This document shows, in pieces, positions 3,787-49,837 of a DNA stretch of 64,000 nucleotides (its first letter is position 1; each line of letters begins with the position of its first letter). The DNA is from Ostrea edulis (lineage: Eukaryota): assembly GCF_947568905.1 (NCBI RefSeq), contig NC_079166.1:10478001-10542000 (forward strand), given 5' to 3'. Both the position numbers and the translations under genes were made by a program. The notes below the pieces were generated by a model that saw only the letters and a list, made by a program, of their open reading frames with translations, was not told where the DNA came from and did not search any database.

Positions 3787-3950
3787 NNNNNNNNNNNNNN
3801 NNNNNNNNNNNNNNNNNNNNNNNNNNNNNNNNNNNNNNNNNNNNNNNNNNNNNNNNNNNNNNNNNNNNNNNNNNNNNNNNNNNNNNNNNNNNNNNNNNNN
3901 NNNNNNNNNNNNNNNNNNNNNNNNNNNNNNNNNNNNNNNNNNNNNNNNNN
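3787..3950. other. Assembly gap (164 N)
   Basis: Run of N. Confidence 1.
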
Positions 3951-14919: not shown

Positions 14920-15140
14920 TTCCCTGCGTGAGCGGGAGGTAGTACCGGGAGCGTTCATTGCGTGAGCGGAAGGTAGTACCCGGAGCGTTCACTGCGTGCG
15001 CGGGAGGTCGTTGGTTCGAGCCCTGCTCATACTTTGTCCGCGTCAACATAGGAAGTGACAATGTTCGATATTCAGAAGTGAAAGTCAGGAATCTTTCGGA
15101 TGAGGCCTCACAAACCGAGGTCACCTTTCACATCAGACAG
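14920..15140 (+). mobile_element. Degenerate tRNA-derived SINE with locally repeated head
   Basis: B-box GGTTCGAGCCC at about 15014. Body (TAGGAAGTGAC...AGAAGTGAAAGTC...TCTTTCGGATG) resembles the copy at 26990. Short repeats GCGTGAGCGGGAGGTAGTACC lie upstream. Confidence 0.5.
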
Positions 15141-15329
15141 TGACAAGACAGAGAGCTGTCCGTGTTACATCCCTGAGCTATATGCATTGTCTTCACTTAC
15201 AGCCAGTGACGTCTCTGTATGAGTAAAAAATTCTCAAAGGAGCGTAAAATAAAAACAAAGCGTTCCTCAGATTTCAATTATATAAAGAGTCACCAACTTT
15301 TAACTTTCCAATGACTTTCATGCATATAC

Positions 15330-15726
15330 ATGCATGTATAGTCAGTTTTTAAATCGAGGTAAGCTACTGACTAACAAATTGATAGTACAGGGATTTCAAC
15401 AGTCTCGATTGAAGTCAGCATTTCGCAAATTCTATGGTCGTTATAACGATCTACTTCGTCAGTACAATCGCATTGGGTCAAATGCTGTTTCATACCGATT
15501 GCTAAGCCGTTCTTGGCACACTGATTTTGACTGCGGATAACTCCGATTACCTGATCAGGATATAGGGCTCACGGCGGGTGTGACCGGGCAACAGGGGATG
15601 CTTACTCCTCTTAGGCACCTGATCCCACCTCTGGTGTGTCCAGGGGTCCCTGTTTGCCCGACTCTCTATTTTGTATTGCTTATAGGAGTTATGACATTGA
15701 TCACTGTTCGTTATCTTCACCTTGCA
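15330..15726 (+). mobile_element. Longest Penelope-like element fragment: RT C-terminal (thumb/HTH) coding region plus 3' UTR
   Basis: ORF YSQFLNRGKLLTNKLIVQGFQQSRLKSAFRKFYGRYNDL resembles the C-terminus of PLE-type RTs. No GIY-YIG domain follows. It ends in the shared family terminus. Confidence 0.65.
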
Positions 15727-15986
15727 TGCACATATAAAAAAGCAGGAAAAATTCCGCCAGTTATTTTTTATGAGCAAACTTTATATAAACATGATGAGAA
15801 TTTTCCTGACGCACACTTTTACTACTATCACTTATTAGAGGTATTCGTTTGTAAGGGCATTCAGGATACATCGCTTACTTCTAATATTTCAGAATTCTTA
15901 GCTGGACTGCTACTAAACACCATGTCTCTCCGTTCTATGTTTTATAATATGTGTCCTTTGGCACCAAACTTGCTCCGCAGTTGGTG

Positions 15987-16029
<43 letters not shown>

Positions 16030-16502
16030 CATTTATTTATCTCTAGTATATAACATACTTATCTTCAAACTATCAATCGACCTTGTTATGTATGAGCGGT
16101 GTGACCAAGGATATGACACTGTAGTAGTCATGGGTGAGCTTTGTGAATGAATGTTCATGTTAGTGTATATTTTTTATTTATTGCCAATGTGTTATTTTAA
16201 GAATTTGTATGTTTTGTCTAGAAATGGTCGTGTGATTCTGTAATTAATGTATTGTAGAGTCTATAACTAATTTATTAACAATCATGCATTGTATTACAAC
16301 AATAGACTTACTCAAGGGATCATAAATTAAATTTTTATAATATATATACATTTGGTTAAAAGATATGAAAAACATACGTGACCACCATACGTGGAAGGAA
16401 CAAATTAATAAATTATCAAAAGGAAACTTTCTTTTTCTTCTATATATATTTTACCACGCTTCGAATGACGACAAAAAGTAACTGAAACTTTATTCGAACT
16501 TC

Positions 16503-16626
16503 ACACTGATATATCAATACAGATTTATACGACACTGATATATCAATACAGATTTATACGACACTGATATATCAATACAGATTTATACGACACTGATATA
16601 TCAATACAGATTTATATGACACTGAA
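16503..16626. repeat. 29-bp minisatellite, about 4 copies
   Basis: Unit GACACTGATATATCAATACAGATTTATAC. Confidence 0.95.
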
Positions 16627-16699
16627 CATGTTGTGTAAAAAGAAGTTCTTGATTGAAACTCGGATTTCAGAAAAGAGTAGAAACATATTGTTACATTCA

Positions 16700-17892
16700 T
16701 CAGAGATGAATGGCTTCGTCTCCTTGTTTCTCTCTTGTTTTGGTGCGAACTGTAAAACGGCCAGAAAAATTATTACAATCCCAGGTTGTTGGGTCAAACA
16801 CATCGTCCCACAATTCCGTTTCAAACACACCCGGTTCTTCATTTTCCAGTTCCTTCAAATCGCGCCGATGATTAAACAGGCGATATTTCATCAGAATTCC
16901 GTGCTTCAGTTCTGGAGATATAGCAGATATGTGTTGTGGAGTTCTGTTTTGCTTTATAACTCTGACGCCCTTTTTCTTCTCTTCAAAGAGGAGAGGGAAG
17001 TTCATAAGATAGTATATAAACTGATTTTCAATTGGCGGAAAGTTTCTGTCTTTAAAGATTAACTGCTTTGTGAAGATCTTCAAATGCAAATCCTTTTCTT
17101 TTAACATCGTAAGGGTATTTGCTTTCGGCCGCCTAAGTAACTGAGAATGACTTGGTAACAGAATTGACGTACGTCTTTCCTCTGTTTTTTCCAAATAAGG
17201 AATACAACCTGGCCCGTCTGATTCCCATCGCTTTATACCGCCCTCTCCTGAGGGTTGCTCTGAAATCTCCGTAAATTGGACGCCTGGAAGTAGACTTTCA
17301 TTAATTGGTTTATTCTGGGCGCTTTGTATATTGTAGAGATTCTCGTTGAAGCCGCGAGGATACCTTTTCTGACGCCTAACCAAAGATATTACTTCCGGGC
17401 TCTGCAGTAACTGCTTATTCTTATCCTTGCCTGCGAAAGTGTAAATATAAATGCGCTTGGTAGATACATATCAACAAACCAACAACAAAAAAAATCATTT
17501 TTATTTTAACATCCTAATGTAAACATTGAAAAACATCAACAACTCATGTTAAATTAGAATGCCCGAGGATGTTTGAACATCAACGAATGCTACTTTAATT
17601 TATTGAATATTACCTTTATTAGTTTAGCATGGATGGCAGATGCAGAATAAGTAGTTTTTATGCTCGCAATAATTGGTGCGTGTATTTCATTTATAGTTCA
17701 TTTACTTTCATTGAAAAAGATACTGAGATTTTTTTTATTGCTGAATATATGAAACTCCGCTTGGTGTGGGGAAAGTGTAAAAAAAAAAACAAAAAAAAAA
17801 AACTCACTTAATCTATGTGGAAGAATTCCTAAATCGTAAAAAACCTGCAAACATCGAAGTTTTTTCATAGACAGAAGGTAATCATTTTCCAT
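16700..17892 (-). CDS. Two-exon ORF of unknown family, about 271 aa
   Basis: Exon 17892-17808 (MENDYLLSMKKLRCLQVFYDLGILPHRL, donor A|GTGAGT) splices in phase 1 to acceptor TTTCGCAG|GC at 17430, in frame with the 227-aa ORF ending at 16700. Confidence 0.55.
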
Positions 17893-20084
17893 GGTTATTT
17901 TCTATTGTGATGTCATAGAAATCTTTGACGTCATAGTCAAACGGCTCATCTGTGATTGATGATGTCACAATGAATAACGCTGGTGACGACATTTCGTCGG
18001 CTCAGATACTTCCTCTTGTAACGCAAACTTCCACCAGAGTTCGTTTGCTCACAAATTCGTAGGCACTGTGACGTAATGAGGCCTCGACGGGGAGTTTGCT
18101 TGTAACGTTATCAGATTTCGCAGTCAATGCTTTGATAATAAAGATTTATGCATGGCAGGAACATGAATTTTGTTAAAGTCTTTTTCAATAGTTATTGTAA
18201 AAGACCTTGTTAACCATAATATATTTAAAAAGTCTAAGTTATATATGAATAATCAATTAAATGTTTCAAAATATTGAATCCAAGGGTAATAACTCACTTT
18301 TCACTAAATTATTTATCAAGTCCATAATGCGATAGATTTCCTTTATTTTTCACAATCATTTTGTATATTTTTTAAAGAAACAATTACATGAAATTGTTAT
18401 GAATACTTATTCTATTACATCATTTTAACCACTTTTTTGGTTACTTATCATTTCCATTAGTGGAACTCTTCAAATTAAAGGCGTGTAAAGTCGTGCTACC
18501 GGGACACCATACGTAAACATTACTTAGGCATACATAATATAAATTATGGTATCGGATACATATTATATATAACCGACTGCAAACCATAACACTGATTAAA
18601 ATTCTAAAGTCAAATTTAGGAATTGATTATTCTCACAAGAAAACAGACGAACTTATTAAACTATGTGAGTGAGTGCAGGTACTAGATCTGTCAAATCTGA
18701 CCGATATAAAGCATCGATCGCAAGAAGAACTGTGAAGGGAAAAACCTATATGCACATCCAACACAACAACTTTTAATGTGAGTAATATGTTTTTAAAGTT
18801 ATTCTGTCAGACTATGAAGACATTCTATTTTATCATACAATTAGGACAGGTTCATATGGCATGGACTTGGTAATCGTACACGAACACCCCCCCCCCCCCT
18901 CAATTTCCATATTTTAGAACAAGTTATATATATGCCAAACTGCGTTTTTAAAGACGTTTATAACACTAATTAACACAACTAATGCGTTTCCAAACTGCAT
19001 TCAAGCTATTTTGAAAATTACAAAATATTGATGGATTTAGGACAGAGAACATCATTGTTTGGAATTTTTAAAATAGGTGTGGTGGAGTTTAAAAACATGT
19101 AACATTTTTAATAAGATTGTGTTAGAATATTTGAAAAATGCAGTTTGACCAATGTATGTTATTTTATTTAAAAATACACCATGTATTTTAACTCTTAAAA
19201 GGGGGGGGGGGGGGTGTGCTATGACCGTTTCGTTTATGTCCCAGTAATATCGCACTTGCTCGCGAGACTTGTGTATTTTCTTACCAATGACGCAGAAGAG
19301 TCATCAAAGCGCGATAACTCTAACGAGCTGGTAATGAGAAGTAACCTGTTATCAATGTCAAAAAATTGTAATTATTATCAACATTTCACCATAGATAGAT
19401 AGATAGGTAGATAAAGCACAGACAGTTTCACTTTATTTGGATAACCACTTCCGCCCCTACCGCCCCTACCCGGGGTTGAACTCCTATCAGAAAGTAACCA
19501 GCGCGCTAGACCGCTCGACCATCTAGGCAAGTAAAAAGACTTTCGTTAATTGGTTTATTCTGGGCGCTTTGTATATTGTAGAGATTCTCATTGAAGCCGC
19601 GAGGATACCTTTTCTGACGCCTAACCAAAGATATTACTTCCGGGCTCTGTAGTAACTGCTTATTCTTATCCTTGCCTGCGAAAGTGTAAATATAAATGCG
19701 CTTGGTAGATACATATCAACAAACCAAAAGATAAGTATTCTAGAAAGGTGAAATTACCTTATGTCACAACTCAAAGTCAATGATGGATTGAAGGGGTAAG
19801 CATGGTCGGGGGAGACATACCCCTCCTAGCTACATGTACATTTCGTTGACGGAGCATATTGCAATATAGTGTAACATGCCAAACCAAGTTATATATAATT
19901 ATGAATTAACTATCAGGTATTATTAATCACTCTTCCAGTTGATGTCTTCTGATATATTTGATATTAATATTTTCACACATAAACATACACAGTATCAGTA
20001 TTTCTTTTGAGTGTCTTTAATTCTTTTCATTTGTTCAAAATTTCCATGTCGAATATACCGAAACAACTTAATGGATTTAGAAAA

Positions 20085-20310
20085 TTAGTTGCCGATCGGC
20101 GGACTCGAACCCGGTCCGACCACATGTCGGTCAGCCTGGGGATTTTGACAGAAATGAAAATAAATGTAGAATATATAGATAGATAGATAAAGCACAGACA
20201 GTTTCACTTTATTTGGATACCCACTTCCGCCCCTACCGCCCCTACCCGGGGTTGAACTCCTAGCAGAAAGTAACCAGCGCGCTAGACCGCTCGACCATCT
20301 AGGCAAGTAA
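20085..20310 (-). mobile_element. tRNA-derived repeat with TAGA microsatellite
   Basis: Minus strand has A-box-like TGGTCGAGCGGTCTAGCGCGCTGG (about 20300-20275) and B-box GGTTCGAGTCC (about 20111-20101), separated by about 170 bp containing (TAGA)n. Confidence 0.4.
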
Positions 20311-22410
20311 AAAAAACCTTGCTTTCGATGACGATGGAATTCTCGCCACGCTGTCACACGCTACACGGTCATTGAGAATGGAAATGGGATACAGTTAACG
20401 TACATTTAAGAGGACCACACAAGATACACGAACAAAATCCCCAGTCGTTAAAACACATGATGTGGACGTAACACATATTATTCCTCAACATTCTTAAGCG
20501 CATTGTTTATTATTGCAGCGCATTCATGAGGAAATGGCTGTCATAGCCTTTTAATGTTTTATTTATTTTCTGTGCATTATGAGTATAACATTCTGTAGTA
20601 AGGTATATATGCATTGTAAAACACCTTTGAGCGTACATAGTGTATGAAAAGGGTGCGTGCTATATGAATATTTTATTATTATTATCATTATTGAAAATGT
20701 AAATATTTATCAAAGAACAGAGCATACGGGTCTTTAAAGTTCTTAATGTCTATGTGTAAATACCGCATGTTTTGAAAAATATAGCAAAGAAATTGAATAT
20801 GTATTCAAAACTCCGATCCTAAGGCTAAATTATTAAGTATCGACATGTTCACAAGATCTGTCATCAAACATATTCAACGGTTAAGTCGTACAGGAAATAG
20901 AAGGGGAAATACATATCCTATATTTTTCAAGCTGACAATGTTTATATAAATGTGCAAACCGTGATAGAAATAAAATGTTCGTCTTGAACCAGGAATTACG
21001 TACTTTCTAAATTTCTTTTATGTCAAAATGTAAAAATCAATTTGAGATCTAAAATTTAAAAAAAAAAAAAAAAAAATTAAAAAATAAAAAATAAAAAAAA
21101 TAAAAATTTACAGTTCATAATTCTGAAATTCAGATTGATATTCGGTTTGATACATTTGACAGTGTTCATTTTAAAATATGGTCTATAAAATGCATCAGGT
21201 GCCCGATTTCGAAACAAGTTAGGGGGAAGGGGGGGGGGGGGGTAACGGACGGTTACTTCTCAGCCGCACGATCATGGCACCTGCGTTTAATATACTATTG
21301 GCAGTAAAACACCGCTATACATATACAGATTATGTGTGAAATAATGAGAAATGTATCGAGTATATATAAAGAATGCTCACAATTTGATGTGTTTTAAGTG
21401 TGTTGTATAAAGTTAATTGCACAAACTGGCAACCGTTTCCAAAACAATTTTACTGAAAATCTTGATTGACTATTGGATCTCTGAGAGAAGAGGGTATTTG
21501 AATATCACGAAAAGTTCTATTTCATCAAATCATTAAATTCATTAGTCAGTGATTGTCCTTTGTTGTATCATAACAAACACCCCCTGTTTTCTCTTTCACC
21601 GTCTATAAAAAATTTCATACATGTAATGTAAGCAAACCACATTTATTCAAACAAAGCTGAATTCAATTTTTTTTTTTTTTTTATATTTCCGTTATTCTCA
21701 TTAAAAGGAAGGTAGTCAGAATAATTTCATTTGAAATTACTTCCTATTTCAGTTAGAAAGCGCGAACGAAATAAATAGTATTTATGGTGCAAGGGAGGCG
21801 ACTCTAATAGCGAGCACTGAGTTTACAAATATTCAAATCGCGCCGTATTTGTCTCTCTTCTTGTATATAAATGTGTAGCAATTGATCGATACTCTGCTCG
21901 ATCCTACTACTGTGGATGTTTAAACATTTAAAATTACGAAGTTATGCATGAGCAGTCAAGGGGAAATATATCCACGAAGAGAGGAAGTTATATCGCACTC
22001 ATTCATTGCGTGAATATATGGTAAGTGTGATTTTTTAAATTTCTGTTTACTATACCTCGTCAAAGGAATATCATTTTTCTTTTCGATTGCTAATTGCAAA
22101 TTTCATGTCGATGAGCGAAATAGTCAGGTGGTATAAGTGTAGGATTCAATCGACTGAATACTTGTACATTTATGTTCATATATCAACTCCTTGTTGTATT
22201 ACCCGAGCGGATTCCACTTTCGCTTTAATAGATTTATGTACTTTATAAGTTACCAAATCTTTGGATACAGAATGTTTGGTGATATACGTATCAGAACTGA
22301 ACAATTCATTTATATGCTCCGGTTAGCTTGATCAATACGGTTTGTTTAAGTTTTTGACAACAATCCAAATTAAGTTCAGGAAATTAAAGCTGGTATATAT
22401 ACGTCTTTGT

Positions 22411-23632: not shown

Positions 23633-25540
23633 GTTGTCATGGTTGGAAAGTAAACATAAGGCTGTCATGATTGGAGGTAATTTAATAATAAGAGTTGTCA
23701 TAGTTAGAAGCATTGAGATTATATACAAGATAAATCCTTAATGTCAAGAATTCAAATAATCAGGGTCTGTATGTTTTGTTGTAAAATGCTATCAGTGCTT
23801 ATATTCAGAATATCTGTCCAAGTTTCCCATTTCGTTTTGAAATCTTCGAGTTTACAGTTTTTGTAGCCATATATTTCAATGTTGAAATGTGTGTTTTGAT
23901 ATCTATAAGTAATTCGTGAATAGATTGTTTTTCATTCAAACAGGCTTCCTATGAATATATGATTTAAAAATCAGAAAGATTAAGTATGATCCACTGGTTT
24001 TAGGATCGAGGTTAAGTCCAAAGATAAATGTTAATGGATTTCTTGGAATAACATTTCCCCTTGTCTGACAATACTCATAGAATATATTGATTAAGTCTGG
24101 AACAACGGGACACTCCCAAAGTATAAGACATATTGTCTCTTCATATGTATTACAAAAGCTGCATAATCTACTTTCTTTGAATCCTATTTTCAACAAAAAG
24201 GTATTAGTTGTTAGTATGTGATGGTTGATTCTAAACTGTACCCATTGTAGTTTGGTACTCTTACTATTGATGAAAGGTAACTGAAAAATATTTTTCCAAT
24301 CTAATTCTGATAAGGTAAAATACTCTCTCCATTTTGGTTTGTAGAATGATGTGACATTTTCATCTAAGTTTATGGTATAGGACATAGCTCTACTACCGTT
24401 TTTGGATGAACAAAAGAGTTTGATATGAAAAGGTATAAAAGGCTTATAGTTCACTTCTTCCTTTAAATTCTCTGACAATTCATGCTAGCTGTTACTGCTT
24501 TCTGTAAACCTAGGTATGTCAGAAAGTTGGTTTTGACATTAAAATTTTTCTCTAGAAGCAATAACTTTTCAAAAAAAGATCCCTTTTCATCAAGCAGATC
24601 ATTGATATATATTATATTCTTGTTGAACCATTCACTATAAAAATGGAACCTTTTCCCTATATTAAAATTCTTTTATTAAACCAATTTAGCTGGGATATAA
24701 AATCTTCCCATGTATGTAACTTCATGTTATTTTGAATATTTTGAAAGACAAGGAATGTGTCTATCCAGATGTGGAATTTTTTGTTGATGTTGTCTGATCC
24801 AGTTTTTTAAATCATATCAGTATTAAATGATTTACCCAATTGTTTTTTCCAATTTGCATTTCGACCATTCATTGATCTTTTAATCCAGGAAGATTTAAGG
24901 CCTTGTACAATGTATATAGTTATTGCTGTCAATCATATTCAATCCATCATGTGCATATTCTTGCGTGGTTTATTTGATTTTGATTTTGTCAATATTAGAG
25001 TTCCATAGAAATTTATAAGATACTAGTATACTATTTAGGTCTTTTATGAATTTGATTGATGGTGTTGGTAGTGAAATAAATAAATGATTCATTTGGGAGA
25101 AGGTAAGGGATTTTATTAGGGTAATCCTACCTATAGGAGTGATATGTCTTTTGTTCCACTGGTTGGTAATTTCTTTGATTTTAATTAACTTTTTATCATA
25201 GTTGAGTTTGAGGATTTTACTTAGGTCAACATCAAAATGGATACCTAGAAGCTTAAATTGAGTTGTCCAACGAAAGTTCATTTCTTGACATAAAATTTCA
25301 TTTGAGTATTTTTGCCTACCTATCCATACTAATTGTGTTTTTGAAAAAATTAATGTTAAGTCCAGAGATTGCATTAAAATTGTTCAGTTCATCTATGGTG
25401 GCTTTTAGAGACTTTTCAGAGTCATCTAGAATTACTGCTGTGTCATCTGCATGTCTGCATATTGAGACATGAATTCAATATCAGGTGCTTTAATATTAAA
25501 CAGTCATTTAACACAATTTTGGTTTAATGAGTTACCCTAA
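23590..25540 (-). mobile_element. 5'-truncated, degenerate non-LTR retrotransposon (L1/Tx1-like): RT and C-terminal zf-RVT
   Basis: Minus strand: SQYAD[8-bp duplication]DTAVIL...NAISGLNINFSKTQLVWIG; KLLGIHFDVDL...TPIGRITLIKSL; KLQWVQFRINHHILTTN...CSFCNTYEETICLILWECP. Frameshifts and stops present; ends near (GA)n at 23591. Confidence 0.9.
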
Positions 25541-25614
25541 AAAAGAATGAAAATAAAATGACTTTATAGTCTTTCGTACTGTTTTCAGTTTTAACCGTCT
25601 TGCTTGACCAACAG

Positions 25615-27452
25615 TTGAAGGGTCTATAAAAAAAATGTTTCATGGATACAGATACCCTGTTTATCCGGTGACATCATGTCCTCCGGATGATGCGGCCTGG
25701 GAGTCGGCCTCTAGGCGGAGAAACTGCAGTCGTGACATCGTCAAAAACCGTTACATCTGCGTACCCAATCAAAGCAAGACTTCACTGCTGGAGTTCTGCT
25801 ATGATGAAATCAGACCTATGGTTCAACCTGGTAAATATGTGCTTATCAGAATCAATGATAAAACTAAAATAATTTGACATTTTATTGCACATTTTGTTAG
25901 AAACAAAAATATCGATGCATGGGTTGATATGTATATTTCATGGGTTATTTTGGTTGTAATTAGTGCAAATATCGAATTACTAAAGTTTAAGGAAGTTGTG
26001 TAAAATTGCTGTGATGTTCAAACGTTGAGATATACCTCTACCAAATGTTTACCTACTTCACTCGACATAATTGATGAACAAAGGATAAAATTAAAATTCT
26101 ACATGGTAAAATGTATTTATTTTACTTATATTCTATAACATAAATTCAGTGTCCATTTCCATTTCTGAAACATATTTGTAGCTAGTGTCATTAACCAACT
26201 ATTTACACTTACATGTATTTTCATCAGACATTTTCACCAACTATTTACACTTATTTTCATCAAACATTTTCACCAACTATTTAAACTTATTTTCACCAAA
26301 CATTTTCACCAACTATTTTACACTTATTTTCATCAAATATTTTATCATCACATGTATCTGAAACTTATACAACGACACCGCACTTAAAATATCAATGACA
26401 TGCATCGGAAGTATTAAATCAGAGATTCAACAACTGAAAAGCTGTTCGGATTTTAGAATATCAGGAGTTCCTTGAAATAAACAAGGAACGAATTAAACCT
26501 GCTAATCAGCAGACAAATATCATCTTTGTATGAACAATAACTATCAATGATACGACTGGCCGGTGTCGGTATGCGCATGCGAACTCCTCTGCTCAATCAC
26601 AGGCGTGGATCCAGATAGTTTCCAAACAGTGGGATGAGACTCTCATTACTACTAGTTATATGGAGGGCTCCAAAACGTACACAGAGCATTTAGCAAATAC
26701 GGTACATTTCTGCGAAACGTGGCTCCTGAACTTGACCTCTTCAACATATCGCGCATTACCAAATTCGATAAACGATAACTCAAGATTAATCCAATGAATA
26801 GATGTAAGAAATCAAACTCGATGTTAACATTTGGTGGGGACCTAAGGGCTTAAGTCCCCTGAATCTACTGACTAAATAAAATGTGCATGCTTTTCTGGAC
26901 AGTTCTATAAAAATAGATCATGTGGGGGTGGGGGGGGGTTGGGGTTGGATTCGCCATTGCTAGCTACGTGTTTTTAAAATAACTAACCCTGCATGGACCT
27001 GGTTGCTGTAGCTCAGCGATATATCGCTTGGGTTTGTGGGAGGGAGGTCGTGAGTTCGAGCCCCGCTCCTGCCATGTCGCATCAAACCTAAGACATAAAC
27101 ATAGGTAGTGATTGCTCCTTTGCCAAACGCACGGCATTTAAAAGTGAGTGTCACGGGTCTTTCCGATATGACCTTAAAAATAGATATCCTGTGTTGCGGC
27201 AGGTGTTAGCACGTTAAAGAACCCTCCTTGCTACGGCCCCGTGCGATAAGCACGTCTACATTAGTAAACAATTCTCAAAGCAACGTTAACTAATGAAATC
27301 CTTCACAACAAATAAAAATAAACAATTCCTGGGATACAATACAAATGGAAAAAATAAACCCAAATACAATACAATTGGAAAGTAGAGAATACAAATGAAA
27401 TATTATACAATACAAATGAAAAAGATCAAATATTACAACGTTTGACATGCCA

Positions 27453-27498
<46 letters not shown>

Positions 27499-30400
27499 TA
27501 TCACAACCTGCAAAACCAAATCTCCTAGCGACTTGTGACCAGCACTCTCGACCATTTCGACAAATCTTTAAAACCTTGCTTTCGATGGCAATGGAATTCC
27601 TTTCACTTTGACACACACTATACGGTCATTGAAAATGGTAATGGGATACAGTGAATTTAAGAGGACCATGTAAGATTCATACTTCATTTGAGATATTTTA
27701 TAAAGTATTGATTCAGTCTGTCTTCAGCTCTTATAAAATAAACGTCGGATATACAATTTTCTATTTTCACTATACTTTTACAAGGAAACTGTATAGAATT
27801 AGCCGGTACAGGAACTTTAAATCAGCAGAAATGTTCTACGTTTAGGGAGGGATGCCCGACAGACCCTTACTTCAGCGATCTGATATACAAAAGTAAGTCA
27901 TGTATAAAGAACTAGATTCGCCTTAACATTGTCGTATCAGTAACTAAAATGCATGCCATTGTTGATTAATTTGTGTAAAACGCAATTTTATTGGTTAAAT
28001 TGAATTGATCATTATGTTTATATCATATAAACTGATATGGTGCATATGACGTTCTTGGAATTTCCTCACAATGCGTTCCATTTTCTTGCTACGACAATAA
28101 TCAATCTCTACCCAGAGTTATCGTTCCCGCTACGTTTCACTCTGTCAACGTCTAAAAATCATATCAAAACGTACTAAAACTAACTTAGCATATCAAACTG
28201 TAATGATCATATCTAAGCAAATCAAACACTTGTCTGAATTTTATAAACGCAGAAGCTGGTAAATATGAGACACCTGAGCAAATTGAAAGGTTTTATATAA
28301 ATATTCATTCATTCATTCACCCAATAATACTAGAATAATCATGGAATTCGTTATTTTTGTGAACTTACTGTAAGATTTTAAGCTTAACACTAAAACTTGT
28401 AAAATCATACTTTATAATGCAATAGGTAGAAATAAGTTTTGCCAAGAATCTTGACATTCAGATGTTGACAGGTGTTGTAGCGCAGCGTAATACGCCCTCT
28501 GGTGAGAGATTTCCACGTCATATGACATTCAAATGTCCTTTATCATTATTCGTCAAATTACATCGCATGTGTTTTGAATACTTTCTACTGATAAGGTCCC
28601 GTTGCTATGGTAGCCAAAACACACGGAAACAGATATCGTTCAGTATTACCGTTGTATCGAAATTTTATGAACAGTTCCCTGTCTATTTTCTGTGAATTGT
28701 CAAAAAAGAGAAATTAATGAGAAAGAAATTGTGTAATTTTCAGGTTTTTTTTTAATTGATGCAGTGGTACATGGGACACTGGTAAATAAAATGCTTCCCT
28801 CATGTTTTACGGATTACACTCTACAAATATTGATTCGTATTCTACCTTCCTTTTTCTAAGTCATATTGGTGATTCAAGGTAGCGCTAAAATATCTTTTTG
28901 ATCTTGTCGACAGTTATCATGGTAACTATCGTGTACAGCAACCGACGTGTTGTTTAATTTTGTTTCTAGCTGATACCACATTGCACATGTATCATGGAAG
29001 TTCTAAGAATGTCTGTGCGCATGTCTGTCCATAAAAGGTTACGGGGCGGGGTTACTGAGAATGGGAGCTAATGAAAATGTACATGTATATCTTACTACAG
29101 ATCCTGCTTGTTTGCAAATCAACACCATCAACGGCTGTTATGTTGCTGACCCAAAGTGTCCAAACAAAACGTAATTAGAAATCTGACTTGTTGTTACCCT
29201 CCGTAATGTCTCATAAAATGACTATGTTTATTTTATTTGGAATCAAGGGATAGAGATAGTACGCTCACACCGGCTAACACAACTGCATATCCCATACCCA
29301 GCACAGATGGAAGTGGTAGCGTCTGGATAGCTGGTGCTTTCGTCGGAACTGTCGTGGTCATCTTAATCCTTTCAGTACTAATACTGCTATTTCTTCGAAG
29401 AAGACACGGGCACCGAAGACGCGGTGGTGGAAGTATGTTAATTTCATCATACATTTTATCAATGTAAATGGTGTCGATAATGCGCGTCTGACATTATTGA
29501 AATACGTTCTGTTACAATATAATATTGCACTTCTGTAGAGTCTACACGTTCAACAAACCTGCTGTTGGGATCAGAGGAAGGTAGGTATCAGTAACGTATA
29601 ACACTGCGTGCGAATTGTAGAATAGCTTGTTTTTACATGTAGGAAGGTAATCTGACAAAAAGGGTCCATAATGAAAATCTCTTTAAATGAAAGCTGTGAA
29701 CTTATTCTTTTATCATAGTATTTCATATGCATGCTATCATTAATTGGATCAGTTTGCAATAATCCATGCCTCCTCTTGTGCCATTTCACATTTTGTACTT
29801 TTAGAATTGATTAATCAATTGAAATTTTGGTGATAAATTGAAAAGAGCAAGACTCCACAACCCTTCAATAGCACACTTGAGTTTTAAAATCAACGAATGG
29901 TGGACTTTAGGCTTGGGAATATTTTATATAATTTTCTATCAAAAAAACTTACGCATGAATAGTTTGTTTTCATATTTGAAGAAGACGGGGTTGACGAAAA
30001 TATTGAAATTCCAGAAACATCAATAGGACGAAAATCTAGCTCTTCTATGACACCGAAAGGTAATGCTGGTTTGTAAAAATATATATATAGGTTGGAAACA
30101 TCGTTTGTCTTACTTTCCTATCATGAATCTTGCACATGATTGTATCACAATTCTCCAATTCTTAAATTGGAATTTTCACGTATCCGTTCATCTCACAGTT
30201 TAAATAAAAACAATAAAATTTGTGAACTGAACGACTTTAAAGAAGACACAAACCTTTATATTTCAGTATGTGATCTTGGTGTACGTCCTGTTACGATAGA
30301 GTCCCCATTCTACAAAGAAACAAGAGCATTTATGGCTGTAAAAGACGCCATAGCAAAGAATAATTGTGTTCTTATAATTGGTGAACCCGGATGTGGAAAA

Positions 30401-33400
30401 ACGGCAATGATGAATGAAGTAGCTAACAGTCTGATTGCAGATGATTATGACATACAGGAAGTTTTCACTTTCCAAGATATCAAATCGTATCCAGACAAGA
30501 GGAACCTTTACATTTTTGATAATGCCTTTGGAATATTTGGATGTGATATTTCATTCATAGACATCTTAGATAATTTTCGAGATATCAAGACACTGCTGAG
30601 AAGTAAATACAATAAACTTATCATAACATGTAGGCTTACCGTGTATAGAAAAATGCAACAATTCAATTTTCCGTCCGTGATGAAAGTTGTGAATCTTTCT
30701 GATCCTTCAATTTCCCTGTGTTGTCAAGAGAGGAATAATCTGCTTCAGCAGTTTTGCAGTTATCACCAGCTGTTGCTGCCAGATGTTAAACTATTAGCGG
30801 GTTGCATAAACCAGTCTTTTCCACTATTGTGCACACTTCTATTTGAGGTTGATGAATTAAGAGCACATGCGGCTGATATTTTTGAAAATCCCATTGCATC
30901 ACTTCTTGAATTCTTTGATTCTTTAAGGCAAGACAGACCACTTACCTATATTTGTCTTGTATATTGTGCACTACAATGCCCCGTGCATTACCCTTTAAAT
31001 AATCCCAAAAATTGTTCTGAGAAAGAAAACTCCGTGATTAGGTCATGCGAAAAATACTACAAGGGTGTCTCCATGGAAATGGTTCAACAGGAATTTGATC
31101 AAATAGTAAAAACAACAGCATGGCTACAAAAAAAGAGAAACACCAGTACTTACATTTTTAAGCACACCTATGTGTATGAAATACTTGCATATCATTTTGG
31201 GAAGAGTCACCCAGATGATTTCTTGGCATCCATGGCTTGTAATTACATCGCAGAAAAATGTTTGGTGAGAAGTGAGACAGAAAAAAATGTTTATGGGGAA
31301 CAGCTGTGTTTACTTACGGACAACGAAAGATTGAAAGACAGACTTTTTGCTGATATAGATGATGGTGAATATGTTGATGTATTCACAAACGAATGTTGGA
31401 AAAATGATGGATTTCGTGAAACCTTTGTGAGATCTGTGCGAGAAATGACATCAGAGGATCGTGTAAAAACGTTTTTCAATTCCACTTTGGTAAAACGGAG
31501 ACCTTATTTGATTAAAAAATCTAATAAAAACCCAAAGAACTATATTTCTTTGAAGAGCAATGATGCCGGATGGTTTCGTGAGAAACTTCTAGAAGATCGG
31601 ACGGAGACAGTGGAGGGTGATTACATTTACCATGAGGGAAAGGTCAAAGCCATAAGTTGGGTGATAGGATATGGACTGCATGACGTTCTTACGGAGCTAG
31701 TCAATAAAGAAGAAGACAATAAACATTGGATAAGTCATGCAGATTTAACAAGAAATGCTGAGCAGCTCAGACTGCTGATGTTGGCAATCCTCAGTGAAAA
31801 TCAGGAAACTTTGATGATTGTTTTGGGAAATGTGAATTCTTGTAACATCAATACTTCATGCTTCTCCTTGGCCAAAATTGACGGGGATCAATGTGAGAAG
31901 ATATACTTAAATAAGTATAAGAGATTTACTCCATTAACAATTTCTTGCTATAAAGGATTTTCCAGTGCAATTAAAACACTTGTGGAAAAGGGAGCCGATG
32001 TCAATTTAAGAGATCAGAATGGAAGCTGTCCCTTAGTATTAGCTTGCCGATTTGGTGCATATTCTGATGTCGAATACCTGGTGAATCGCCAGGCTTCTGT
32101 TTTGTGTAGGTCGGAAAATGGCGATTCACCTCTTATTGCCGCTATCATCGGCAATGATTTGGAAATTGTTCAGTTTCTTCTCAGCAAGAAAGCAGATGTC
32201 AGTGAGAGCAACAAGAAGATGAGAACTCCGCTCTATTACGCGGCTAGAGGGGGGTCTCTGGACATAGTCAAACTCTTAGTAGAAGCAAATGCAGCGGTAA
32301 ACGAAACTGACGAGTTTCAAAAGTTTCCGTTATACTGGGTCGCTCAACTTGGCTATTTTGAAATAGCATGTTATCTTATAGACCATGGCGCTGAGATTGA
32401 TCAGTGTGACACGAAGGGGAAAACTCCACTTTATTGTGCAGCAAAGCGAGGATACCTCAAAATTGTTAAAGTTCTTGTCAAAAATGGAGCTTCCATAAAT
32501 TGGACAACTACAAAGAACAGAACGGCGCTTTACAGAACTGCGAAGAGAGGACATTTTGAACTGTGTAAGTTTCTGTTGGACAAAAAAGCGAATGTCCATA
32601 AAACGGACTGTCAAGGCTACACTGCTTTATATTGGGCTTCTAAAAAGGGTCATTTTAGTATTGTAAAGTTGTTACTGAATCATAATGCTTCTCCGAATAA
32701 TCAGTCTGATGGAGGAAAAACAGCATTGTACTGGGCAGCACAGAGAGGCCATTTAGATATTGCAAAATCTCTCGTCGAGAAGGGAGCTGATGTTAATATA
32801 GAAGATGCGAGCAGTAAGTCTCCTTTGTACTGTGCTTCGAAGCGTGGACATAAGGAATTGGTAGAATTTCTTCTTGAACATGGTGCAGATGTCAACACGA
32901 GAAACATCAAGAACAAATCAGCACTGTTTCGCGCGTCTAAGAGAAATCATTTGCATGTTGTTGAAGTTCTCATAGAAAAAGGAGCGGATGTGAACCTTTC
33001 CAACAATGATGGTGAGTCTCCACTTTATTGGGCAGCCAAAAGAAATCATTTGGAAGTTGTCGGTAAACTTTTGAGTGCCAACGCTAACGTAAACAGTTGC
33101 TCAAATCTACAGCAGACACCTTTGTATTGGGCCTCTCAGCGAAGCAACTTGGCCGTTGCTAAAGCTCTCGTTAAAAGCGGCGCAGACGTAAATAAGGCAG
33201 GGAAAAACAATAAATCACCACTTTATTGTGCAGCAAAACGGGGTTGTTTACCTATTGTAGAACTTCTCGTGGAGCAAGGAGCTGATGTTAATACCAGAAA
33301 CGTAAAACAACAGTCAGCACTGCTTCGGGCCTCGAAAAGAAACCATAAAAACGTTGTGACATACCTTGTGAATAAAAACGCTGACGTCAATCTTGGAGAT

Positions 33401-33700
33401 AACCATAAAGAAACGCCACTGAAATGGGCGGCAGAAAATGGACATTATGACGTAGTCGTGATTTTGTGTGAAAAAGGAAGTGACGTCAATGCATTTAATT
33501 CTGAACATAAAACACCGCTCTACTGCGCTGCAAAACATGGCCGCGAAAATATCGTTCAATATTTATTAGGAAAGGGGGCTAATAGTGATCTTCATGACAG
33601 ACATGGTCACTCGCCATTATCCATGGCAAGGGATGCTGGATACGATAATATTGTTCAAATCATTAACTCTGCAAAATATGCATCAACACCGACCTATTAG
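25615..33700 (+). CDS. Single-pass membrane protein: Cys-rich ectodomain, TM helix, STAND (nSTAND3-like) P-loop NTPase, about 18 ankyrin repeats; first (signal-peptide) exon not located
   Basis: Exons 25615-25830, 27785-27892, 29101-29170, 29248-29432, 29539-29580, 29982-30059, 30267-33700; all GT-AG and phase-compatible, about 1377 aa. TM: VWIAGAFVGTVVVILILSVLILLFL-RRRH. Walker A GEPGCGKT (30380-30403), Walker B LYIFDNAFG (from 30506), sensor-like LIITCR. 33-aa ankyrin repeats at 31925-33670. Confidence 0.88.
26205..26345. repeat. Imperfect minisatellite, unit about 36 bp
   Basis: Repeated CATTTTCACCAACTATTTACACTTATTTTCATCAAA. Confidence 0.8.
26990..27330 (+). mobile_element. tRNA-derived SINE, probably MetaSINE-like, in a receptor intron
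   Basis: Head GTAGCTCAGCG...GAGTTCGAGCCCC. Core CTTTCCGATATGACCTTAAAAA...GTGTTGCGGCAGGTGTTAGCACGTTAAAGAACCCTCC. A-rich tail. Confidence 0.65.
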
Positions 33701-43255: not shown

Positions 43256-43518
43256 GATAACGTGACGGAACAAGCGGCGAATTTTGATCTTGTACTGCTT
43301 GATATGGGGGCTCAACGAGGATATATTGAAACGGAGCAGAGTCGCATTCCACCGTTCCTAAGACACAACCAGTGTTAAAAACTTCTCCAACACAAAGCAG
43401 CATACATCCAGTCACCGCTTGTTCTCTTCAGGAGTTTATACACATCTAATTTTAGCTTTTACCCTTTACACCTTTAATTTGGCGTATAATCTATTTAATT
43501 CTGCTCAGTAACTCTACA

Positions 43519-43608
43519 AGTAAGTCTCCTTTGTACTGTGCTTCGAAGCGTGGACATACGGAACTGGTAGAATTTCTTCTTAAACATGGTGCAGATCAGC
43601 ACTGTTTC
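43519..43608 (+). pseudogene. Short remnant copy of the ankyrin-coding region of the receptor gene
   Basis: AGTAAGTCTCCTTTGTACTGTGCTTCGAAGCGTGGACAT...CATGGTGCAGAT matches about 32814-32889, then jumps to CAGCACTGTTTC (about 32919). Confidence 0.85.
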
Positions 43609-43789
43609 CAGGGGCGGATCCAGGAATTGTGGTTAGGGGGGAGGGGCGCCACTTTATGAGGCAGTGGCTCCAGGGCGAAGCCCTGGTGGGCGTCCAGGGG
43701 GCGAAGCCCCTGGAAGCTCCTGGATATTACAGATTTTATGGGGCTTGAAATATTTTCTTCATTTCAATATGTACATATAACAGGAAGTT

Positions 43790-44303
43790 ATCTTTGTGAT
43801 ATTGTTGTACATCAGCTAATTATTGTACAACTTTGTGATATTGCTGTACATCAGCTAATTATTGTACAACTTTGTGATATTGCTGTACATCAGCTAATTA
43901 TTGTACAACTTTGTGATATTGTTGTACATCAGCTAATTATTGTACAACTTTGTGATATTGCTGTACATCAGCTAATTATTGTACAACTTTGTGATATTGC
44001 TGTACATCAGCTAATTATTGTACAACTTTGTGATATTGCTGTACATCAGCTAATTATTGTACAACTTTGTGATATTGCTGTACATCAGCTAATTATTGTA
44101 CAACTTTGTGATATTGCTGTACATCAGCTAATTATTGTACAACTTTGTGATATTGTTGTACATCAGCTAATTATTGTACAACTTTGTGATATTGCTGTAC
44201 ATCAGCTAATTATTGTACAACTTTGTGATATTGCTGTACATCAGCTAATTATTGTACAACTTTGTGACATTGTTGTACATCAGCTAATTATTGTACAACT
44301 TTG
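43790..44303. repeat. 39-bp minisatellite, about 13 copies
   Basis: Unit CTTTGTGATATTGCTGTACATCAGCTAATTATTGTACAA. Confidence 0.97.
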
Positions 44304-44571
44304 ATCGAGGTAGAGGGCTCAGAATCAGTCTGCTGTCAAACCCCATTCAATATACGCTGAATGAAGTAAAGATTTGAATGTAAAAATCACTTGATACTAT
44401 GTGTAAAATTGACATGGAACTTCAAATTAAAAGTTTACAGATTTAAAGTTGACTCAGAACCATTAGCGAACATACCACAACCAATACATTATTTAATTAA
44501 AGATATGTTTTTATATTCTCAAAGTTATTCATGACTTGCAAATTATAATAGTAGGCAAACAAACAGACACA

Positions 44572-49637: not shown

Positions 49638-49837
49638 NNNNNNNNNNNNNNNNNNNNNNNNNNNNNNNNNNNNNNNNNNNNNNNNNNNNNNNNNNNNNNN
49701 NNNNNNNNNNNNNNNNNNNNNNNNNNNNNNNNNNNNNNNNNNNNNNNNNNNNNNNNNNNNNNNNNNNNNNNNNNNNNNNNNNNNNNNNNNNNNNNNNNNN
49801 NNNNNNNNNNNNNNNNNNNNNNNNNNNNNNNNNNNNN
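49638..49837. other. Assembly gap (200 N)
   Basis: Run of N. Confidence 1.

Follow-up and report, generated by a model that had tools for sequence, protein, structure and literature searches.

In the textbook view, STAND/NLR switches are sensors of the cytosol. Oysters have no adaptive immune system; they rely on innate receptor families that have undergone massive expansion, and they suffer repeated mortalities from viruses and Vibrio as well as transmissible neoplasia. Membrane-spanning versions of a STAND protein would show how an external cue can act without intermediaries on a switch that oligomerises under nucleotide control. A locus in Ostrea edulis raises the question of whether such a protein is made there from a single gene. 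We examined it within a 64,000-nucleotide stretch of contig NC_079166.1 (hereafter the window, whose coordinates we use throughout). The original prediction, made from the sequence by itself, joined seven phase-compatible exons into one gene whose transmembrane (TM) exon is spliced to an NTPase-ankyrin exon, encoding about 10 Cys, a TM segment with an RRRH motif, a linker, a P-loop NTPase and about 18 ankyrin repeats. Every one of these elements is present.

Seven exons join in frame into a predicted membrane protein

The only large open reading frame in the locus (30140-33700, + strand) carries an nSTAND3 domain and ankyrin repeats. Six smaller exons upstream join it in frame to give a product of 1,370 amino acids (aa), with the following features:

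25635..25830, + strand: exon 1, which holds the start codon and opens the 10-Cys module (aa 1-65; Cys 15/31/42/55)
27785..27892, + strand: exon 2, central portion of the Cys-rich module (Cys 68/82/89); 72 % identity to Saccostrea echinata
29101..29170, + strand: exon 3, end of the Cys-rich module (Cys 105/114/121), with an NKT sequon
29248..29432, + strand: exon 4, Ser/Thr/Pro stalk with an NTT sequon, TM helix and polybasic RRRHGHRRR
29324-29395, + strand: predicted TM helix, aa 151-174, in exon 4
29396-29422, + strand: polybasic RRRHGHRRR in exon 4, directly after the TM helix
29539..29580, + strand: exon 5, 42-nt linker cassette (STRSTNLLLGSEE), in frame
29982..30059, + strand: exon 6, 78-nt linker cassette, acidic and Ser-rich (DGVDENIEIPETSIGRKSSSSMTPK)
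30267..33700, + strand: exon 7, coding for the nSTAND3 NTPase, a helical spacer and the 18 ankyrin repeats, and closed by the stop codon TAG (33698-33700)
30284..31318, + strand: predicted STAND module (NBD, helical domain, winged helix)
30311-30679, + strand: Pfam nSTAND3 span
30380-30403, + strand: Walker A GEPGCGKT (aa 265)
30506-30523, + strand: Walker B LYIFDN
30623-30634, + strand: sensor-1 Arg (ITCR)
31925..33673, + strand: ankyrin array of 18 repeats (aa 780-1362), from Pfam matches and repeat count

Exon 1 opens with a Met that is retained in seven related models (P0001, P0020, P0021, P0022, P0026, P0028 and P0037), lies downstream of an in-frame TGA at 25605-25607, and has an open frame ending at the donor CTG/gtaaat; it shares 68 % identity with exon 1 of S. 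echinata. For exon 2, acceptors at 27785 and 27812 both keep the frame with exon 1, and a start at 27846 was discarded since it breaks that frame. We chose 27785 because orthology and spliced contigs both point to it. The junctions at 29432/29539/29982/30267 are canonical GT..AG and maintain the frame.

Assembled contigs lacking introns, from two sequencing runs (X1 and X2) that are RNA only by guess and derive from a relative about 95 % identical to the window rather than from its own individual, cross the exon 1/2, 2/3, 3/4, 4/5 and 6/7 junctions. X1 record 1 holds the tail of exon 1 with exons 2, 3 and 4, covering 27784-27892 and running on into exon 3; loose ends of this record and of X2 record 6 fit a join between the tail of exon 1 and 27784 or 27785. 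X2 record 8 holds the tail of exon 2, exons 3 and 4 (29248-29432, joined at both ends), 41 unplaced letters at the position of exon 5, and exons 6 and 7. The joints have GT..AG ends at 29170/29248 (both runs), at 29432/29539 (X2), and at 30057/30265, equivalent to 30059/30267 when the cut is moved by two (both runs). Exon 6 is covered by X2 record 8 and X1 record 4, and exon 7 by contigs of both runs at about 95 % identity; cover of the transcript begins in the tail of exon 1, short of the 5' end. DNA contigs from the window's species (runs X4 and X7) read through introns 5 and 6; neither of these two runs has a listed joint at an exon boundary. The spliced contigs, the in-frame joins and orthology in S. 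echinata thus bear out the predicted seven-exon, single-gene structure, giving an exact, transcript-supported model for one such receptor in which the RNA status of the supporting runs is a guess.

The S. echinata locus contains a stop-free seven-exon frame with identical phases, in which all 10 Cys and the TM helix are kept. DNA-level alignment is confined to exons 1, 2, 3 and 7, and the introns are unalignable. Exon 3 aligns (78 % in DNA, 67 % in protein) to S. echinata sequence treated as intron and left out of the RefSeq model. The counterpart of exon 4 encodes a TM helix and HRRKNKNSRKNK at the equivalent position, that of exon 5 is 48 nt long in unchanged phase, and that of exon 6 carries DNERIEIKES. 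Given this agreement, we consider it probable that the locus is one + strand gene whose 1,370-aa product crosses the membrane once, with its N-terminus outside or in the lumen and its domains in the proposed order.

The same RefSeq model (P0001) joins exon 2 straight to exon 7, and because skipping exons 3-6 preserves the frame, a non-membrane isoform may exist. One could go further and take the main product to be soluble, made from exons 1, 2 and 7 or as NTPase-ankyrin alone from an internal start, with the TM form minor or non-productive. Besides P0001 and the intact frame, this reading could draw on X1 record 4, which starts within intron 5 and runs on through exons 6 and 7, and on many Logan ORF calls that begin at the NTPase. 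The Logan calls are, however, uninformative here because they are bacterial-style calls on single exons. Exons 3-6 are open with equal phases across oyster genera amid unalignable introns, and the sole contig spanning the region, X2 record 8, includes exons 3, 4 and 6 with its 41 unplaced letters at exon 5. A 10-Cys module with glycosylation sites would also be unlikely to fold without translocation across a membrane. We therefore regard a mainly soluble product as very unlikely. Current annotations misname relatives or omit the membrane part, as had been anticipated for automated annotation: P0001 skips exons 3-6 and the Logan ORFs start at the NTPase.

The NTPase is of the STAND type

Exon 7 scores 68.3-69.8 bits with the nSTAND3 profile (PF20720; cut-off 27.2, E 3e-19). 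Scores for NACHT and NB-ARC, spanning 12-17 bits, fall below threshold (NACHT 14-17 against 26.7; NB-ARC 12 against 23.5), and the window protein has no LRR matches, its repeats being ankyrins. We accordingly rejected assignment as an NLR in the strict sense (NACHT or NB-ARC with LRR); by its sequence the protein is organised like an NLR but falls outside the NLR family. The motifs GEPGCGKT, LYIFDN and ITCR are all present, and the Walker A Gly and Lys and the sensor-1 Arg are invariant among 21 relatives. Nucleotide hydrolysis may be weak, because Asn replaces the second acidic residue of Walker B in this clade.

The STAND class of NTPases reportedly goes back to Leipe, Koonin and Aravind in 2004. 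A tripartite core of NBD, helical domain and winged helix separates it from generic AAA+ proteins, and the AlphaFold 2 model of our module (pLDDT 80.9) shows this core. In a structure search with the model, STAND structures (MalT, NLRC4, NLRP3, NOD2, NRC1 and Apaf-1) ranked top, with 265-305 residues aligned over model residues 6-350 and across all three parts, while generic AAA+ proteins (Clp, p97) aligned over about 190 residues (model residues 7-207). Profile and structure searches thus agree with the predicted STAND-type NTPase. Of the two outcomes named beforehand as contrary to the prediction, a TM gene ending before 30267 and the lack of any STAND-type match, neither was observed. Downstream, the ankyrin array matches Pfam Ank, Ank_2, Ank_3, Ank_4 and Ank_5 with E down to 1e-127, and we counted 18 repeats.

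The Cys-rich head probably lies outside the cytosol

The head contains Cys at aa 15, 31, 42, 55, 68, 82, 89, 105, 114 and 121, together with four N-x-S/T sequons, of which three are positionally conserved. The protein has one hydrophobic segment only (aa 151-174; KD19 maximum 3.2), followed by RRRHGHRRR and a charge bias of +7 on its C-terminal side, as expected for a single TM helix under the positive-inside rule; S. echinata retains the helix. On the strength of hydropathy, charge bias and sequons, it is most likely that the N-terminus faces outside (or the lumen) and that the NTPase and ankyrins are cytosolic. No signal peptide was detectable in the window protein, its S. echinata counterpart or the nearest paralogues, and the cleavable N-terminal signal of a type I protein is lacking in the window gene. 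Because its first 25 residues are hydrophilic (mean KD -0.44) and no upstream signal-peptide exon was found within the window, insertion would follow the type III (reverse signal-anchor) route. Translocation of an N-terminal domain of about 150 aa by a reverse signal-anchor is possible, if uncommon.

The start Met lies 3-8 residues ahead of the module in all close relatives, each without a signal peptide, and this, with the lack of an upstream signal-peptide exon, could mean that the clade has lost the signal peptide, so that the head stays cytosolic and the hydrophobic segment anchors the protein in a different topology. The strong positive charge after the TM helix nevertheless predicts an N-out orientation, and the head, which has kept its sequons and each of its 10 Cys, is the most strongly constrained part of the protein. 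With the orientation reversed, about 1,200 aa of NTPase and ankyrin, both cytosolic folds, would lie in the lumen. We consider a cytosolic head highly improbable.

The head defines a mollusc family with many different tails

Using phmmer (E <= 1e-3), we found the 10-Cys head leading about 440 mollusc protein clusters. We found no Pfam family or PDB counterpart for it, and define this unnamed family here by alignment A1. Its pattern, C-P...C...C...EFC...C...C...GCP...C...C...C, is complete in the window protein, and the 10 Cys are invariant or nearly so in 85 sequences. Most members have a signal-peptide-like N-terminus (67 of the 76 checked) and a TM helix after the module (70 of 89), and the paralogue P0164 encodes its signal peptide in a separate exon. 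The predicted ectodomain therefore holds up for the family at large; for the window gene, which has no detectable signal peptide, an N-out head is the likely arrangement.

The full architecture occurs in RefSeq models of five oyster species and in mollusc-only ESM Atlas clusters, where the nSTAND3 shares are 99 % and 69 %. This spread agrees with the suggestion that such Cys-rich exons mark an expanded, uncharacterised receptor-like family of oysters and other molluscs, the groups in which we have found it so far; judged from its sequence distribution, the head is mollusc-specific. Across the family the head is joined to nSTAND3-ANK, Roc-COR-ANK, ANK alone, HEPN or AIG1 tails. A mollusc-only ectodomain, unmatched among the solved structures searched, thus heads STAND, ROCO, HEPN and AIG1 proteins, and the family as defined offers a concrete, testable entry to surface-to-cytosol immune signalling in invertebrates.

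A model for signalling from the membrane

The order of parts (10-Cys module with sequons, short stalk, TM helix with a polybasic stop-transfer motif, linker, nSTAND3, helical spacer and 18 ankyrins) suggests a working model. The head would place the protein at the plasma membrane or an endosomal or phagosomal membrane and bind a conserved external ligand or partner. Clustering by ligand, or loss of autoinhibition, might then trigger nucleotide exchange and oligomerisation of the STAND module at the membrane. Because the protein has no recognisable effector domain, the ankyrin array may recruit downstream factors, serving as a partner-binding surface, an autoinhibitory one, or both. The linker between TM helix and NTPase, about 65 aa and acidic and Ser-rich, appears to be fast-evolving.

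Inverted signalling of this kind, with ankyrins as output, is a matter of pure inference and is not told apart from a membrane-tethered cytosolic sensor, in which the ankyrins sense in the cytosol and the head and TM helix do no more than position or regulate the protein, perhaps on a phagosomal or endosomal membrane, passing on no outside signal. C-terminal repeats generally act as sensor and autoinhibitor in characterised STAND proteins, the structural matches of our STAND module are proteins with such repeats, and soluble nSTAND3-ankyrin relatives without the head exist. In the family, acidic dileucine-type sorting motifs follow the TM helix in 22 of 79 tails, more than the 9.4 ± 2.8 obtained by shuffling, a hint of trafficking through endosomes. 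Against this, the head is the most conserved region of the protein (68.8 %, compared with 46-61 % in the cytosolic regions), a 10-Cys domain of such size and constraint exceeds what a membrane anchor needs, and one head with many different tails fits a shared input module. We judge the tethered sensor unlikely. As a tentative and still doubtful extension of the outside-in model, the head could be a new extracellular fold and a shared ligand-binding input, wired within one polypeptide to nSTAND3, Roc-COR, HEPN or AIG1. The results would be one-piece fusions of a surface receptor with an NLR or a ROCO protein. In these, an outside ligand would drive oligomerisation at the membrane in a nucleotide-dependent way that bypasses death-fold adaptors.

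Relation to known STAND receptors

The original prediction implied novelty, and this did not survive comparison with two published systems: the idea of a membrane-spanning NLR-like protein is not new, judging from the passages on oyster proteins in Kaur, Burroughs, Iyer & Aravind (2021, eLife; PMC8195603) and on sea-cucumber membrane NLRs in PMC13133943. The former describe oyster Cys-rich-TM receptor-like STAND architectures and lineage-specific TRADD-N/STAND expansions, with a constant Cys-rich extracellular N-terminus and TM helix, variable tails that include STAND NTPases, HEPN, AIG1 GTPases and ankyrins, and a dyad of DED and NCOA6-clade TRADD-N between the TM helix and the tail. The oyster expansion and the Cys-rich head with TM helix are shared with our family, whose partner census contains the same four module types; the two Cys-rich domains are compared by description only. 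Unlike those receptors as described there, our protein has no DED/TRADD-N dyad, and its linker is too short for one. Searches for DED, TRADD-N and Death domains gave no match in the window protein or 49 family representatives, and we rejected membership in that Cys-rich-TM-DED-TRADD-N class.

The sea-cucumber proteins AjNLRC4 and AjNLR-new (PMC13133943 and its references 24 and 25) are described as STAND-type receptors integrated in the plasma membrane; in AjNLRC4 a recognition domain outside the cell is combined with a TM segment and an NTPase inside it, and this protein is experimentally tied to Vibrio phagocytosis. Like them, our protein would be a membrane-integrated STAND-type receptor of a marine invertebrate, in our case as read from sequence. 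As described there, theirs have NACHT and an Ig ectodomain, no ankyrin array, and belong to another phylum, whereas ours combines nSTAND3 with a 10-Cys head.

With Apaf-1, NLRC4, NLRP3, NOD2, plant NB-ARC proteins and the bacterial MalT/Avs, the window protein shares the predicted NBD/helical/winged-helix core, Walker A and B, the sensor-1 Arg and C-terminal repeats. Those proteins are soluble, with an N-terminal effector or adaptor (CARD, PYD, TIR, CC or nuclease) and mostly LRR, WD40 or TPR repeats; ours has a putative lumenal or extracellular head and a TM helix at the N-terminus, and ankyrins, but nothing recognisable as an effector. The NTPase family (PF20720) and the ankyrin C-terminus recur in soluble metazoan proteins, such as the Mytilus HEPN_DZIP3-nSTAND3-ANK protein P0019; these have neither the Cys-rich head nor the TM helix, and some carry an N-terminal HEPN domain.

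Seven exons encode one predicted membrane-spanning protein

Our data show that the gene encodes a predicted single-pass membrane protein in which a constrained head, rich in disulfides, is linked to a STAND switch and an array of ankyrin repeats, and that it belongs to a modular family. An ORF scan of the window revealed one long ORF within 25.6-33.7 kb (30140-33700, + strand), and upstream of it short open segments bordered by canonical splice signals. The seven phase-compatible exons of the original prediction join in frame. For the first junction, an exon 2 at 27846-27892 was rejected: it does not share the frame of exon 1 and meets a stop. Starts at 27785 and 27812 both keep the frame, and we chose 27785 because orthology and transcript contigs support it.

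Exons of the gene (window positions)
25635-25830, + strand, exon 1
27785-27892, + strand, exon 2
29101-29170, + strand, exon 3
29248-29432, + strand, exon 4
29539-29580, + strand, exon 5
29982-30059, + strand, exon 6
30267-33700, + strand, exon 7

The model totals 4,113 nt and encodes 1,370 aa, with an in-frame TGA 30 nt 5' of the ATG. Translation across 29432 to 29539, 29580 to 29982 and 30059 to 30267 is in frame and reads ...RRRHGHRRRGGG-K-STRSTNLLLGSEEEDGVDENIEIPETSIGRKSSSSMTPK-VCDLGVRPV..., bearing out the junctions singled out beforehand (29432/29539/29982/30267).

Ten Cys of the protein lie inside aa 15-121, and its first 137 aa contain four N-x-S/T sequons. A single hydrophobic segment at aa 151-174 (Kyte-Doolittle 19-window maximum 3.2) is followed by RRRHGHRRR. 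The NTPase has its Walker A motif, GEPGCGKT, at aa 265, and also a Walker B of the form LYIFDN and the sensor-1 Arg inside ITCR; 18 ankyrin repeats occupy aa 780-1362. These features agree with the predicted ectodomain of about 10 Cys, the TM segment with an RRRH stop-transfer motif, and the array of about 18 repeats. The exon 7 ORF product matched the whole set of ankyrin Pfam models, with E-values down to 1e-127.

In index searches, no run recorded as RNA contained the region. Two sequencing runs from one study, X1 and X2, surfaced in the exon 4-7 search only, with a low share of words; their RNA type is a guess, and their organism label differs from that of the DNA runs containing the region. 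Both contain contigs that lack introns and share about 95 % identity with the window; these derive from a close relative, or from a divergent allele or paralogue, and stop short of the transcript 5' end and exon 1 proper. X1 record 1 (338 nt) passes from 48 nt that correspond to the exon 1 end through 27784-27892 and 29101-29170 to 29248-29358. X2 record 8 (545 nt) passes from the end of exon 2 through 29101-29170 and 29248-29432 into 41 nt that are unplaced and sit where exon 5 is expected (the joint 29432 to 29539 is listed), and then through 29981-30057 to 30265-30387. All listed joints are GT..AG, and those at exon boundaries are 29170 to 29248, 29432 to 29539, and 30057 to 30265 (cut +2). 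No exon-boundary joint was listed for X4 or X7, DNA runs of the window's species whose contigs read through introns 5 and 6. In X1 record 4, exon 6 is spliced to exon 7 and the contig starts inside intron 5, which could reflect pre-mRNA or an alternative 5' end. From the X1 and X2 joints we conclude that the TM exon is spliced into the NTPase exon. These probable transcripts continue from exon 4 to exon 7 rather than ending before 30267, as expected if the TM and NTPase-ankyrin parts form one gene.

The NTPase belongs to the nSTAND3 clade

The nSTAND3 profile (Pfam PF20720) scored 68-70 bits against the exon 7 ORF product, compared with a curated cut-off of 27.2; the NACHT and NB-ARC profiles gave P-loop matches below threshold only. 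In an alignment of 21 NTPase relatives, the Walker A Gly/Gly/Gly/Lys and the arginine of T[CS]R are invariant. For the first 574 residues of exon 7, the AlphaFold2 prediction is confident (pLDDT 80.9, pTM 0.82) and matches known STAND structures.

Structural matches of the AlphaFold2 model (match score; residues aligned)
MalT: 14.1; 270
NLRC4: 13.5; 299
NLRP3: 13.4; 295
NOD2: 13.1; 283
NRC1 NB-ARC: 12.5; 267
Apaf-1: 11.8; 265

On the basis of these motifs and structural matches, the protein is a STAND NTPase of the nSTAND3 clade, so that the STAND assignment originally made holds at both the profile and the structural level. It is NLR-like in layout, and is not a member of the NACHT or NB-ARC/LRR families. 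In its clade the second acidic residue of Walker B is Asn (D-N, not D-D), a substitution that may slow hydrolysis.

The head defines a mollusc-specific family with variable partner domains

A Pfam profile scan assigned the N-terminal 10-Cys head to no family. Using residues 1-105 of P0001, the RefSeq model of the Saccostrea echinata counterpart, we ran an exhaustive phmmer search of 1.84 billion representatives and obtained 440 clusters at E <= 1e-3, of which 123 reach E <= 1e-10. The ten Cys are invariant or nearly so in the head-family alignment (85 sequences). Among the predicted structures of the ESM Atlas the head matches mollusc clusters only (TM-score 0.81-0.84), and two head clusters, with 92 and 78 members, consist mostly of nSTAND3(-Ank) proteins. 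The head is a mollusc-specific ectodomain family. A signal-peptide-like hydrophobic N-terminus is present in 67/76 representatives in which the module begins no earlier than residue 18, and 70/89 have a TM helix within 160 residues past the module.

Pfam scans of the long hits showed that RefSeq proteins of five oyster species share the overall architecture.

RefSeq proteins sharing the architecture
Magallana angulata: XP_052694853.1
M. gigas: XP_065926160.1
Crassostrea virginica: XP_022292004.1
S. echinata: XP_061198294.1
S. cucullata: XP_062587675.1

All five are labeled 'uncharacterized' or 'phosphatase 6 regulatory ankyrin repeat subunit-like'. The breadth of the phmmer and RefSeq matches fits the earlier suggestion of an expanded, uncharacterised receptor family, and a literature search found no paper describing the 10-Cys head family.

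A census of partner domains in 49 head-family representatives, each of at least 280 aa, identified ANK in 15, nSTAND3 in 9, Roc/COR-A in 6-7, Ig in 3 and HEPN_DZIP3 in 2, with one each of AIG1, NADAR and a BIRC-type UBA; DED, TRADD-N, Death and TIR were absent at E <= 1e-5. The pattern is one of a receptor-like head that stays constant while the immune-type cytosolic modules vary. Six family proteins (P0041, P0101, P0063, P0066, P0139 and P0033) place the 10-Cys head and a TM helix ahead of Roc-COR (ROCO-type GTPase), with or without ankyrin repeats, and these oyster proteins are predicted to be membrane-anchored ROCO proteins.

The acidic dileucine motif [DE]xxxL[LI] occurs 11-27 residues past the TM helix in 22/79 family tails, compared with 9.4 ± 2.8 in shuffles, and 0/1,000 shuffles reached 22. 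Carriers include P0034, P0056, P0071, P0073, P0083, P0087, P0095, P0098 and P0106. This enrichment suggests adaptor-dependent endocytic or endolysosomal trafficking for many family members. In the window gene, all that remains of the motif is a degenerate NLLL with an acidic cluster after it.

The S. echinata gene conserves the seven-exon structure

The closest database relative of the NTPase part is P0001 (49 % identity), whose N-terminal part is clearly orthologous to exons 1 and 2 and is joined straight to nSTAND3 without a TM helix. In its locus (L001, from JAVQLB010000012.1), the RefSeq model leaves out four exons within 12223-13032 that are conserved, open and compatible in phase. They are the third Cys-rich exon, the TM exon and both linker exons, and the annotated protein therefore lacks a membrane anchor. 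The skipped intron contains a collinear exon 3 equivalent (67 % identity), a TM exon equivalent encoding a hydrophobic helix followed by HRRKNKNSRKNK, and equivalents of both small linker exons, all with canonical splice sites and phases identical to those of the window gene. The resulting seven-exon ORF is stop-free, encodes 1,357 aa, and keeps ten of ten Cys. The loss of the membrane part in P0001 is the kind of error that the original prediction had warned of in automated annotation, and comparable mis-modelling may affect other members of the head family.

The form joining exon 2 directly to exon 7 may instead be a real isoform: it is in frame, because the lengths of exons 3 and 4 jointly, exon 5 and exon 6 (255, 42 and 78 nt, respectively) are all divisible by three. 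It would, however, strand the 10-Cys module in the cytosol, and for this reason we consider it more likely to be a model artefact.

Between the window and the S. echinata locus, only exons 1, 2, 3 and 7 align at the DNA level (72-80 %); introns do not, and conservation begins just 7 nt 5' of the ATG. The alignments indicate exon-specific purifying selection across oyster genera. At the protein level, the head is the most conserved of all regions.

Identity of the window protein to its S. echinata counterpart
Head (ectodomain): 68.8 %
Ankyrin array: 61 %
NBD: 55 %
Helical domain/WHD: 47 %
Spacer: 46 %
TM: 33 %
Linker: 28 %
Stalk: 25 %

Membrane topology and proposed mechanism

In the window gene, the S. 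echinata gene and their nearest relatives (P0020, P0021, P0022, P0026, P0028 and P0037), the protein begins with a Met 3-8 residues ahead of the module and has no hydrophobic leader; P0001, P0020 and P0021 are RefSeq models, each of a different species. Scanned under both strict and relaxed settings, the upstream intervals 12-25.6 kb and 1-25.6 kb yielded no candidate signal-peptide exon. A more distant exon is conceivable on principle, as one paralogue encodes its signal peptide in an exon of its own, 72 nt long and lying 18 kb upstream, but the 25.6 kb scanned here contain no such candidate. Given the missing leader and upstream exon, we infer that this clade uses the TM helix as a reverse signal-anchor (type III). 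An N-out topology is probable: a +7 charge cluster sits after the helix, the Cys and sequons are retained, and a lumenal location for about 1,200 aa of NTPase and ankyrin sequence is implausible.

STAND modules alternate between two states, a monomer that binds ADP and is autoinhibited by its repeats, and an oligomer that binds ATP, and the STAND module of this protein would be expected to do the same. We favor a membrane-tethered switch that would be triggered by ligand binding or clustering through the head, as this is the module that is both conserved and shared; the rival is a trigger by a cytosolic ligand of the ankyrin array. As there is no recognisable effector domain, output would have to be partner recruitment, most plausibly via the ankyrin surface.

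Membrane-spanning NLR-like receptors are already known as a concept, from C. virginica expansions termed receptor-like architectures (Kaur et al, 2021; PMC8195603) and from sea-cucumber AjNLRC4 (Ig-TM-NACHT), a plasma-membrane NLR studied experimentally (PMC13133943). The window protein differs from these in that its NTPase is coupled directly to the TM helix with no death-fold adaptor, is of the nSTAND3 clade and is combined with an 18-repeat ankyrin array; its head is without known fold and is common to ROCO-type GTPases, and its clade has no signal peptide.

Repeats and other elements in the window

Intron 1 contains a (CT)n microsatellite of about 40 nt (27452-27495). A tRNA-like sequence noted by eye at ~26990-27075 in the same intron was rejected as tRNA-derived, as ARAGORN finds none. 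In intron 2, 28100-28510 is a very high-copy repeat, with a summed contig depth of 15,000-22,000 in DNA run X4 versus about 28 in the flanks. It shows many heterogeneous joints (28126-28141 to 28472-28491) skipping about 330-360 nt. The repeat is probably a mobile element of MITE or SINE-like type whose insertions are polymorphic.

Directly upstream of exon 1, minus-strand ORFs at 23936-25374 resemble a non-LTR retrotransposon tail, so that only about 260 nt separate this element from the ATG. They include a weak zf-RVT match (23939-24478, minus strand) and an ORF (24970-25374, minus strand) that is RT-like by eye, with no Pfam match.

The window, in which 3787-3950 and 49638-49837 are masked or N, holds no tandem paralogue of the gene; the sole match is an isolated 31-aa ankyrin fragment (43504-43596, + strand) with 77 % identity to the repeat at aa 1071-1101, which may be a pseudo-exon or a duplicated-repeat remnant. 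It is followed by an ORF of no assigned family (43738-44304). Further downstream, an LTR-retrotransposon-type pol (53173-56616, + strand; aspartyl protease, RVT_1, RNase H) spans three overlapping ORFs and is therefore interrupted by frame changes.
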